Shown here: positions 30,400 to 34,429 of the stretch, in pieces
How the letters are laid out: the number at the start of each line of letters is the position of its first letter
Numbering within the stretch: position 1 is the stretch's first letter
Assembly: GCA_028826165.1 (NCBI GenBank)
Contig: JAPDFW010000084.1
Location: forward strand, 124,001-188,000
DNA from: Anaeramoeba ignava BMAN
Taxonomy: Eukaryota > Protista > Anaeramoebae
Reading direction: 5' to 3'
DNA length: 64,000 bases
Notes under the pieces: model-generated
The model's input: the letters and a program-made list of their open reading frames with translations, nothing else
What the model was told of the DNA's origin: nothing
Databases searched by the model: none
Position numbers and translations under genes: made by a program

Positions 30400-31215
30400 A
30401 TGAAATTTTTAGCACTTATTCTCTTTGTCGTTCTCATTTCAACTATAAAATCAAGAGACATAACTTTTTCAGGATATAATTATCGTGTCAAATCATGTAC
30501 AACTCAATGCGGACCAGGATCAAATTATTTTTCAGATGCAACTGATTATGTTTGGGTTGATGGATCAAACCGGTTGCATTTAAAAGTCGCACAGAATCCA
30601 AGTGCAGGAAACAGATGGGAATGCAGTGAAGTAATTCCTTATGAAGCACTAGGATATGGATTATATTGTTGGGGAGTTGATTTCCAACTTGAATATTTGG
30701 ATCCACATATTGTTCTTGGATTATTCACTTGGTCTGATTATTCTGATAATTATTACACAGAAATTGATATTGAATTTTCAAAATGGAGTGATCCTTATGC
30801 AGATAATGGGCACTTCTCAGTTCAACCTTATGATATCAGTGGAAACACTTATGCATATAATTATACCGATAAACCTCAGCAAACTATGCATTGTTTTGAA
30901 TGGAAAAATGATTATATTCACTTCGCCTCTTTTTCTTACTGTGACCACATCAATTGCATTCATGATGATAATACAAGAATTGATATCCAATGGAAATACA
31001 CTAATGTTTCTGGTATTCCTCCCCCAAATTCAACTCATCCAAGAATCAATTTTTGGATTACTAATGGTCCCCCAAGCCAAGAATCCGAAATGATCATCAA
31101 TAATTTCGAATTCTCTTTGACTGAAACAATTGATGCTCAAAGCTCTCATTCAATTATATCAGCCAGCTTTCTTTTGATATTGACTCTCATTTTATTTTCT
31201 TTCACTCTATTTTGA
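30400..31215 (+). CDS. Secreted/surface GH16-like (ConA-fold) glycoside hydrolase, probable GPI anchor or C-terminal membrane anchor
   Basis: Signal peptide MKFLALILFVVLISTIKS; VWVDG.NRLHLK, LGYGLY, LGLFTW, catalytic EIDIE motif and PRINFW; hydrophobic C-terminus after AQSSHS; intronless. Confidence 0.8.
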   Translation: MKFLALILFVVLISTIKSRDITFSGYNYRVKSCTTQCGPGSNYFSDATDYVWVDGSNRLHLKVAQNPSAGNRWECSEVIPYEALGYGLYCWGVDFQLEYLDPHIVLGLFTWSDYSDNYYTEIDIEFSKWSDPYADNGHFSVQPYDISGNTYAYNYTDKPQQTMHCFEWKNDYIHFASFSYCDHINCIHDDNTRIDIQWKYTNVSGIPPPNSTHPRINFWITNGPPSQESEMIINNFEFSLTETIDAQSSHSIISASFLLILTLILFSFTLF

Positions 31216-31387
31216 TTTCTTTTTTCTTTCATTCTATTTTGATTTCTTTTTTCTTTTTTCTTTTTTGAGAACTTTCTAAACATTTCCCCAAAAATAAAAA
31301 AATTTTTTTTTCTCTCTTTTTTTTATTTTTTTTTTTGGAAGAATAAAAACAAATCCAACAAAAAAAAAAAATAAAAATATAATTTCT

Positions 31388-32332
31388 TCAAATTGGATCA
31401 GTTTCATAATTCGTAACAATAACTTCTTGTGAATTTGTTGGTTTTTTGTGTCGGTTAATTTTTGTGTAATTGGAAACAATATTTTTTGAAAAAAAATTCT
31501 CAAGCTTATCATTCAATTCATTTTTTTTCTCTTTGTGATTTAGCATTGTGGAAAGAAGAAACTTAATACCTTTTGAATCCAATTGATCCAAAAACTGGTA
31601 AAGATACTTCTCGTGCTTTTGTTCCCAAGTTGAATTATAGCCAGCTTCACAAACTTGATAAGGAGGATCGAGATAAACAAAGGTAACATCATCAGGAACT
31701 TGCAAATTCATAAAATCTTCATTCAAAAAAACAAATCTTGAGTTTTGATAAATTTTTTTGTGATAAACCTTCATCTTTTTCCAAGTATAATCGGTTATTC
31801 CTCTTCTTCCCCAACTTTGATTAAATAATCCAGTCCGGTTGAATCGGATTAAATTGTTATGACACGAGGAAGAGAGGATAAAGAAGTCCAAAAAATTTCC
31901 ATGGAGATTGAATCTGTTTCGGATTTCAAGATATTCAGCTTTGTCCTTTGGATATATTTTCCTTTTTATCAGTTCTTTTTTAATAACTCCAAATTTCTCT
32001 TTCTGAAGATATCGGAAAAATTCAATTAACGGTGTGATCGCATCATTGGCATAAGTTTTTGCAAACCGTTTATCTTCTAAATTGACAAAAACACTTCCTC
32101 CTCCACAAAACAAATCAAGCATCACATGTTTCCCTTTAGGGAAATTTGAGTACAGTTGGTCTAATAGATCATACTTATTTCCTGTATAATTGAAAAGTGA
32201 TTTCACTCGATTACTTTTTTTTTTTTTCATACGTTGGCACTCTTTGAGATCCCTGCATCTCATTCTTTTAGTTTCTTCTATTGTTCCTGTTTCATCTCCT
32301 GTTCTTTTTACATTAAGCCTTTTTGCAATCAT
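31388..32332 (-). CDS. dam: Dam-family (D12 class, alpha group) DNA N6-adenine methyltransferase, T4-Dam-like
   Basis: Motif X FNYTGNK, SAM-binding motif I DLFCGGGSV, motif II AND, recognition hairpin NNLIRFNRTGLFNQSWGRR, catalytic FVYLDPPY, LDSKGIKFLLS and terminal EVIVTNY; intact intronless 314-aa ORF. Confidence 0.95.
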   Translation of the reverse strand: MIAKRLNVKRTGDETGTIEETKRMRCRDLKECQRMKKKKSNRVKSLFNYTGNKYDLLDQLYSNFPKGKHVMLDLFCGGGSVFVNLEDKRFAKTYANDAITPLIEFFRYLQKEKFGVIKKELIKRKIYPKDKAEYLEIRNRFNLHGNFLDFFILSSSCHNNLIRFNRTGLFNQSWGRRGITDYTWKKMKVYHKKIYQNSRFVFLNEDFMNLQVPDDVTFVYLDPPYQVCEAGYNSTWEQKHEKYLYQFLDQLDSKGIKFLLSTMLNHKEKKNELNDKLENFFSKNIVSNYTKINRHKKPTNSQEVIVTNYETDPI

Positions 32333-32369
32333 GTTTGATTATCAAAGAAAAAAATGAGTTGTTTTTAAA

Positions 32370-32401
<32 letters not shown>

Positions 32402-33210
32402 CATTTCTTTCTCTTTTCCCTTTGCAAATTAGTTTTAATTTTTTTTAATCTTATTGAAAAATTTTCATTTTTATGTAAAAAATTATCTTCTCTTTTTTAA
32501 AAAATTTTGATCAGAAAAAAAAATTTTTTTTTCTTTTTAAGATCTTTTTCTATTATTTTTAATTAAAAAATTTTAAAAATTAAATAATTTAAATTATGAA
32601 ACAAATAAAGAAACAAATATAAATTGAATAAATGAAAAGAAAAAAGAAAGCAAAAAAAAAATCAAAAAACAAAAAAACAAAAAAACAATAAAAAAAATAT
32701 TTATTTTTCCCTAAATTAGAAGTTCTCATTTTTTTTTAAATTCAAAAAATCTAAAATAAAACATTTTATTTAAACAAATTTATTTAAAACAAATCCAAAA
32801 TAAAGCATTTTATTTAAAAAAAAAATTTTATTTAAAAATCAAAAATTCAAAAAAAAATCAATAATTCATTTTTCCAATCACAATTTTTTAACTTTTAATA
32901 ATTCTTGTAAAGAAAAAATAAAATAAAATTTTTTTGTAACTCATTCAAAATAATTTGATTTACAAAGATCCAAAATTTAAATTATTTAAAAAAAAAAGGA
33001 TAATTTTTTTTTTGCCAAACAAAAAATTTTGAATAACTTGAACAAGCAAAGTTTGCATATCCTTAAATTTGGTTTTTTTTTTTGAAGATTAACATAACAT
33101 ATCTAATATTTGCAACTTTTTTTTTTTTAAATTTGATTTGATTTTTAAAAAGAGAAATTGAAAAATGAAAAAAAAAAACAACTGAATCATGCTGTTTTTA
33201 TATGTACAAT

Positions 33211-34193
33211 TTAATTTTTCTGGATTTTTGTTATACAATTTATAATAGTATTATATAACTTATTTAATTCATTCATTTCAATTTCTTGGGGCATAGCAAA
33301 TTCCCAATTTATCATTTTAACAGGAAAATTAGTTTTTTGTTGGGCGGATGGATTGGAAATTTCAGACTCATCTGGAGAATATGAATTCTGTATTTCACTC
33401 ACTGGTAAAACTTCTAATTGTCTTAATTCTTGGGTTTTTTTTTCTACACTGGTATTTTCATTTGGAAATACAGTTGGGGATAATTTAATTTTAGGTGGAT
33501 AGGTCCAGACATTAGTTTTTATTTTTTCGAAATTACGAGTATCTGAAATTTTAGGTCTCCAAGAAACTCTTTTTTGTTTTTTATCAAATGAAAAGGTTTT
33601 TAAACAGGACTTAGCAGGGCCTAAATAAAAATAAAAATAAAAATAAAAATAAAAATAAAAATAAAAATAAAAATAAAAATAAAAATAAAATAAAAATATA
33701 AATATAAATATTTAAAATATAAATATAAATATAAATATTTAAAATATAAATATAAATATAAATTTAAATATAAATATAAATATAAATATAATTATAAATA
33801 TAAATATAAATATAAATATAAATATAAATATAAATATAAATATAAATATATAAAAATATAAATATAAATATAAATATAAATATAAATATAAATATAAATA
33901 TAAATATAAATATAAATATAAATATAAATATAAATATAAATAATTAATTTTCATTTTCTTAATCATTTACTACTTGTTAATTGTTCAGAATCATTTATAA
34001 CTTTTCTTGTTCGAAATCTTTTATTTTCAAATTCAACGGATACTATAAGTGATTCTGAATTTGAGAATTTTGTTGAAGGTGAAAGTTCCCTTTTTCCAAT
34101 TTGATTTTGTTTAAAATGAATATCCTCTCTAGGAATATTTTCATTTTTAAATGATTTGTTATTATTTGTTGGTGATAATTCTTTGTTTTTCAT
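33211..34193 (-). CDS. Two-exon disordered protein with PP1-docking motifs (KSCLK and KRVSW)
   Basis: Exons of about 33971-34193 and 33211-33620 joined across an (ATAAAT)n intron give ...SPAKSCLKTFSFDKKQKRVSWRPKI..., running in frame into ORF 33211..33402. Confidence 0.65.
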
Positions 34194-34407: not shown

Positions 34408-34429
34408 TGATGACGTTATGATGACGTTA
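34408..34429. promoter_or_regulatory. Tandem CRE-like motif (TGATGACGTTA)x2
   Basis: Exact 11-bp duplication containing TGACGT, about 100 bp upstream of the NOC4 ATG in an otherwise CpG-poor intergenic region. Confidence 0.5.

Follow-up and report, generated by a model that had tools for sequence, protein, structure and literature searches.

The genome of the amoeba Anaeramoeba ignava BMAN carries a gene for a DNA N6-adenine methyltransferase of the D12/Dam family (alpha class) with a T4-Dam-like fold. Its relatives and its place in a phylogeny support lateral acquisition from a phage-type source, and judging from its sequence the enzyme may give the DNA of the amoeba itself a mark of the bacterial kind.

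The methyltransferase gene and its chromosomal setting

The window analyzed here is a stretch of 64,000 nucleotides, and the features of interest in it are listed in Table 1. Consistent with the original prediction of an intact, intronless gene, the 314-aa reading frame contains no stop codon or intron (from the sequence and the ORF list), and its motifs follow each other in the order X, I, recognition domain, and IV (DPPY), all of them intact and the catalytic residues conserved. In profile searches the frame scored 109.7 bits against Pfam MethyltransfD12 (PF02086), far over the cut-off of 22, and 138.9 bits against TIGR00571 dam (cut-off 114.85), and Pfam placed a single domain in it, with no second one. 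The frame aligned to T4 Dam with E 8e-32 (32% identity) and to E. coli Dam with E 2e-14 (21%), which bears out the proposed greater likeness to the phage enzyme. T4 Dam is the best solved relative both by sequence and by fold: the AlphaFold2 model (pLDDT 85) has the two-domain fold of Dam, and its best Foldseek match was T4 Dam 1yf3 (E 1e-21, TM 0.71/0.85). The predicted activity is SAM-dependent methylation of DNA at adenine N6. Searches of the genome (42,843,398 bases in 147 contigs) by protein, family, and profile found only this one copy.

Table 1. Features of the methyltransferase gene, its neighbors, and the MT-A70 genes (window coordinates, unless a contig is named)
Feature	Position	Strand	Description or basis
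D12/Dam-family DNA N6-adenine methyltransferase gene	31388..32332	minus	314 aa, intronless, one copy
Motif X, Y49-K53	32174..32188	minus	pattern identical to T4 Dam Y7-K11
Motif I, SAM-binding loop, D73-V81	32090..32116	minus	alignment
Catalytic motif IV, DPPY, D222-Y225	31658..31669	minus	alignment
DNA-recognition beta-hairpin, H158-R177	31802..31861	minus	alignment with T4 Dam, EcoDam, and 114 relatives
N-terminal extension, residues 1-42	32207..32332	minus	missing or shorter in phage relatives
Bipartite-NLS-like pattern, K22-R23, 12-residue spacer, K36-K39	32216..32269	minus	seen in sequence
TCATT element, initiator-like, 25 nt upstream of Met1	32353..32357	minus	sequence
GH16-like gene, convergent neighbor	30400..31215	plus	intronless, bacterial type, EIDIE motif
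Upstream neighbor, two-exon gene with GT-AG intron	33211..34193	minus	sequence and ORFs; host gene
MT-A70 gene, AMT1-like	C134:119757-120044		genome search
MT-A70 gene, divergent, NPPW	C70:309636-311108		genome search

The gene lies on a contig of 348 kb and is flanked on either side by intron-bearing genes. The long ORFs of the window include NPL4, NOC4, HMG-CoA synthase, Spt20, a WDR11-like protein, a kinase, and BTB, Kelch, and RCC1 proteins; only eukaryote-type or general families were matched, and, as had been claimed, no restriction endonuclease or other nuclease, transposase, or viral hallmark was found among them. Pfam confirmed exons of NPL4 and NOC4 (CBF/Mak21), and GT-AG introns are visible in the sequence, so that the original description of these two as surrounding genes with introns stands, but neither directly adjoins the methylase. 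The spliced neighbors entered the searches one exon at a time. The gene next upstream is the two-exon gene, whose second exon has no Pfam match. This exon contains SCLK and RVSW stretches, which we take to resemble the PP1-docking motifs SILK and RVxF. The divergent promoter between the two-exon gene and NOC4 contains two tandem TGACGT (CRE-like) elements at 34409-34429.

On the other side, the GH16-like gene ends 172 bp downstream of the methylase, tail to tail with it. Its product, present in the EukProt set as a Trinity product, is secreted or membrane-anchored to judge by a signal-like N-terminus and a hydrophobic C-terminal stretch; the gene is single-copy, and its protein matches (36-44% identical) include some named as glycoside hydrolase family 16, with no Pfam match. 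It is probably a second lateral gene that was transferred separately, since none of 107 phage or plasmid loci contained a GH16-like relative and co-transfer with the methylase is therefore not supported.

Relatives in huge phages and signs of domestication

The best relatives of the methylase are metagenomic sequences on phage-type contigs, 40-44% identical, and nothing closer than 44% was found. Their loci carry genes for IF3, rpS21, a phage tube protein, RNA ligase, a DenV-type glycosylase, and homing endonucleases, and at the loci inspected no restriction nuclease stood beside the clade relatives. The best annotated matches are phage genomes of 635-735 kb, and IMG/VR holds many contigs with relatives, up to 508 kb in length. 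A profile search returned 775 matches at E <= 1e-30, a number that includes D12 enzymes outside the clade, while the clade motif was found at a single locus in 185,579 prokaryotic genomes, within a phage-like stretch. We noted contig CAZCJR010000003.1, from a Cellvibrionaceae MAG, with a clade member amid phage-type genes (HNH, DprA-like, PNK, and Nudix); it is probably a phage contig binned with that MAG. Most of the matches come without a taxon, and none of the others is labelled as eukaryotic; the RNA ligase of one carrier phage had no match in the A. ignava genome. These enzymes make up a large and widespread clade of orphan D12 methylases of jumbo or huge phages.

In a maximum-likelihood tree, built from rows thinned by identity that did not include the Trichomonas group-3 sequences, the methylase fell inside a nine-member group (support 96/94) nested in a larger group with a megaphage enzyme (96/85), apart from the enzymes of giant viruses and of restriction-modification systems. 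An enlarged tree gave an inner support of 94/86 and grouped the T4-type enzymes with FokI/AlwI-type domains (96/98). The AU test rejected a grouping of the methylase with T4 Dam (p=0.033): the kinship originally seen holds for the fold and for the closest solved relative, but membership of the T4 Dam clade was rejected in favor of a sister clade of huge-phage enzymes. Matches in giant-virus genomes (GVMAG) are 23-31% identical and distant in the tree, and the long ORFs of the window include nothing viral; we rejected an origin in giant viruses (NCLDV) or an endogenous giant virus. Together with the phage-type relatives, this nesting supports the view that the gene was acquired laterally, as the original prediction proposed.

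At 0.79, the terminal branch of the methylase has about double the length of its sisters' branches. The enzyme has kept 38 of the 40 columns in which 90% or more of the relatives agree and 22 of 103 variable columns, a pattern of purifying selection, though the signal cannot be dated to the time after transfer because no orthologue from a sister species was found. Nor was one found in other eukaryotes. Ten positions conserved in the clade are altered, several of them in the DNA-contact hairpin, among them T to H158, M to L161, M to I162, T to S173, and N to T180.

Further signs of the predicted domestication lie at the 5' end of the gene. Ahead of motif X there are 48 residues, where the 114 relatives have at most 36 and a median of 9, and lysine and arginine account for 16 of the first 45. 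The extension is modelled with low pLDDT, has a predicted helix at residues 18-37, and offers a possible second start at Met24. Its NLS-like pattern may direct nuclear import; bipartite patterns of this kind occur at about 0.04 per 45 aa of host ORFs (KKKK at 0.016), and poly-lysine runs form easily in this AT-rich genome. Of 13 putative gene starts, 7 have the word TCAYT, of which the upstream TCATT is an instance, in the 60 nt before them (6 of 12 excluding the methylase, a small sample), versus 12.7% of AT-rich background windows; these promoter and word statistics for the host were computed on about 217 kb of A. ignava sequence.

Several observations point indirectly to transcription of the gene. 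A methylase product of 291 aa, starting at Met24, is present in the transcriptome-derived EukProt set, the A. ignava entries of which are products of Trinity transcripts, judging by the entry name of the GH16-like neighbor. The sequencing run X3 holds 0.64 of the sequence words of 30400-33600, about the coding share, which would fit an RNA run that includes the methylase gene. The gene's GC content (31%) and codon use are inside the host range and no different from those of the phage relatives, and so do not discriminate between the two.

The recognition hairpin and candidate target sites

The hairpin retains the residues equivalent to T4 R116 and Eco R124 (R163), to EcoDam L122 (L161), and to T4 R130 (R177, invariant in 114 relatives). 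At two other positions it departs from the GATC enzymes: H158 takes the place of the aromatic T4 F111 or Eco Y119, a position that is non-aromatic throughout the clade (T in 107 of 114 relatives), and S173 that of the proline T4 P126 or Eco P134, a contact to the third pair, where all 114 have T or S. The combination of F or Y with P is common to T4 Dam, EcoDam, and the plasmid FokI/AlwI-type domains, and the hairpin type of the phage clade reads small residue, N, M/L, R ... T/S, G, x, R. T4 R130 makes the first-pair contact, and P126S is dam-h, an allele of T2/T4 Dam with relaxed specificity; the roles of T4 F111 and P126 are taken in part from the alignment to EcoDam. EcoDam recognizes the guanine of pair 4 with R124, inserts Y119 between A and T, and touches the T:A pair with L122 and P134; its Y119A mutant, which has lost the intercalator, is crippled (PMC4417163).

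Because both the intercalator and the proline are replaced, GATC specificity is not assured for the bacterial-style mark first proposed. We lean slightly towards a target site that includes GATC, with the third base probably relaxed. An intercalator stretches GATC to the length of five bases, so that a true GANTC site is possible; we consider a five-base site of the GANTC type unlikely, and a site of neither kind only a little less so.

Word counts in the carrier phages lean weakly towards GANTC. Its median O/E is 1.05 in these phages compared with 0.87 in other D12 phages, at a nominal p=0.012; the idea preceded the counting, the loci are non-independent, and two other palindromes differ equally. 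One carrier megaphage avoids GANTC (O/E 0.79), while the carriers in general avoid GATC and CATG and mostly not GANTC. Avoidance of GATC is uninformative, since T4 avoids it as well, and an enrichment of GATG was discarded as a by-product of the avoidance of GATC and CATG. In the host sample of about 217 kb, GATC and GANTC counts are close to expectation, with about 2.2 GATC per kb, or by extrapolation about 93,000 sites.

Possible role in the host and known systems

The A. ignava genome also contains two MT-A70 genes, one AMT1-like and one divergent with an NPPW motif, the latter probably an AMT6/7 partner. The first is called AMT1-like because one exon scored 107 bits against ciliate MTA1-complex structures compared with 64 against METTL3, and the MT-A70 search of the genome showed no METTL3-like match. 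With an AMT1-like gene present, the Dam-like enzyme would be an additional writer of 6mA rather than its only source. The accessible part of a 2025 survey of eukaryotic 6mA contains no mention of Anaeramoeba (PMC12695648).

No DpnII-family nuclease was found in the genome by a six-frame search with a working control, in which intron-rich genes may escape, and a search for the DpnI family, run without a positive control, was blank. Across the window and these two families of the genome the methylase is supported as an orphan, as had been supposed, and the self/non-self discrimination suggested for it has no partner nuclease in either family. Six-frame searches of the genome also gave no match for the methylase family PF01555 or for the A32-type ATPase (Pox_A32), subject to the same escape of intron-rich genes, or for C5 DNA methyltransferases (PF00145, DNMT2-like included), where the controls worked and introns could hide one.

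We consider it fairly probable that an orphan methylase of a huge phage was captured, is expressed, and enters the nucleus to methylate host DNA, with protection from foreign nucleases as the most plausible purpose. A. ignava feeds on bacteria and harbors bacterial symbionts, and a phage gene could have come in by this route. A solitary methylase gene of a jumbo or huge phage of anaerobic bacteria would have entered the chromosome and been retained by selection; it has a promoter element of host type and encodes a basic tail at the N-terminus. In the nucleus, the enzyme would bind SAM, read a short G-A...C site with the hairpin arginines R163 and R177, place the flipped adenine in the DPPY pocket, and write 6mA on host DNA beside the native AMT1 system. 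Phage orphan methylases ordinarily shield DNA against restriction nucleases, and by analogy the mark would protect the amoeba's DNA from foreign restriction nucleases of digested prey, symbionts, or virions. Chlorovirus virions carry such nucleases, thought to degrade host DNA or chromatin (PMC7019647). No restriction-nuclease threat to Anaeramoeba itself is on record, and we infer nuclear import, activity, target site, and purpose alike. More tentatively, the methylase may provide a second sequence-specific layer of nuclear 6mA beside AMT1, at a site other or broader than GATC, serving as armor against prokaryotic or viral nucleases or as a chromatin mark.

In a variant with the same origin and activity but another purpose, the methylase would be an active writer with a chromatin or regulatory role, its 6mA being added or seeded and then maintained or read by the AMT1 system. 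We hold this to be rather unlikely. Dam-type enzymes are known to need no help in methylating both strands; the gene is not expanded and has no fusion to a chromodomain or other reader, unlike the rotifer N4CMT. The arguments for such a role are that GATC, at its frequency in the host, contains ApT and would fit the SATS context that AMT1 prefers (PMC12695648), that both MT-A70 genes are present, and that N4CMT offers a precedent (PMC8885841).

The long branch and the ten altered positions, together with the ability of EcoDam to bind DNA independently of methylation (PMC4417163), would suit a protein kept for methylation-independent binding, for a drifted substrate, or for marking incoming foreign DNA. 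We judge this improbable, as nothing has been lost from the SAM-binding motif, DPPY, or the two arginines that read bases, and the sequence has no signal peptide for delivery to symbionts. Still less probable is a neutral passenger that came in fairly recently from a fast-evolving phage lineage not represented among known sequences, owes its transcript to read-through, and has still to decay. The gene is intronless, no orthologue was found in other eukaryotes, and A. ignava has 612 putative lateral genes and 220 lineage-specific events (PMC11550330), but the flanks are host-like, with no accompanying phage neighbors, no relative exceeds 44% identity, and the extension and TCATT element agree with control by the host.

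A phage or bacterial fragment joined to a host contig during assembly is hardly credible, even for a non-axenic culture: the ORF alone is foreign-like and lies next to a gene with its own Trinity transcript, its product is in EukProt, two studies of A. ignava supplied five runs that each hold 46-90% of the words of 30400-33600, and the assembly was made from Nanopore long reads with checks for chimeras (PMC11550330). We infer that the ORF is joined to the A. ignava chromosome at the level of reads; Nanopore signal data for strain BMAN were generated in the same genome study (PMC11550330).

If the proposed capture of a huge-phage methylase is true, it would be a clean transfer of a DNA-marking enzyme from phage to eukaryote, into a cell that already had AMT1, and if the enzyme does methylate host DNA, it would be the first member of the huge-phage clade with a readable target site. 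We found no mention of the gene in the accessible literature on Anaeramoeba, supplements of the genome paper included (PMC11550330). The surprise is tempered by the number of lateral genes in A. ignava, some of them viral (PMC11550330), and by the at least 13 captures of N6-adenine methylases known in eukaryotes, with the Dam/T4 group reported only from Trichomonas (Iyer et al., 2016 review, PMC4738411). Phage-type inteins were also seen in A. ignava.

Among known systems, T4 Dam (PDB 1YF3/1YFJ/1YFL) resembles the A. ignava enzyme in being an orphan D12 methylase and in its fold, motif X, DPPY, and the arginines R116 and R130, and differs in clade, in the F111 and P126 positions (here H and S), and in lacking the 42-residue basic extension and the setting of a eukaryote nuclear gene. 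The orphan D12 methylases of jumbo and huge phages (LR756504, LR756501, and the IMG/VR contigs; 35-44% identity) share its hairpin type, whereas the A. ignava gene resides in a eukaryote and has a longer branch and the N-terminal extension. The nearest cellular relatives, the C-terminal D12 domains of FokI/AlwI-type Type IIS enzymes (30-33% identity), are two-domain or paired, stand beside a cognate nuclease, have the hairpin F/Y-N-Q-R...P, and group with T4 Dam rather than with the A. ignava methylase; we rejected a Type IIS restriction-modification methylase, there being no second methylase domain or gene, no cognate nuclease, and a different hairpin. AMT1/MTA1 (MT-A70), present in the same genome, would share the predicted product, 6mA in DNA, but belongs to an unrelated family, works as a heterodimeric complex, and acts in an ApT context.

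Two systems are closest in kind as eukaryotic captures. The Trichomonas group-3 (Dam/T4-type) methylases are likewise Dam-type enzymes in a metamonad nuclear genome, present in up to 10 near-identical copies, with a tail-fibre fusion and near A32-ATPase transposons (PMC4738411); the A. ignava methylase has one stand-alone, single-domain copy, no tail-fibre fusion, and no Pox_A32 match in its genome, and on these counts a Maverick-borne Dam of the Trichomonas type was rejected. In the bdelloid rotifer N4CMT, too, a eukaryote captured a prokaryote-type amino-methyltransferase; N4CMT, a writer of 4mC with a chromodomain fused to it, has a proven function (PMC8885841), while the A. ignava enzyme has no reader domain and is known from its sequence. 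By these comparisons the latter appears to be a D12-family enzyme with a T4-Dam-like fold and predicted catalysis that stands outside both Dam in the strict sense and the Trichomonas group.
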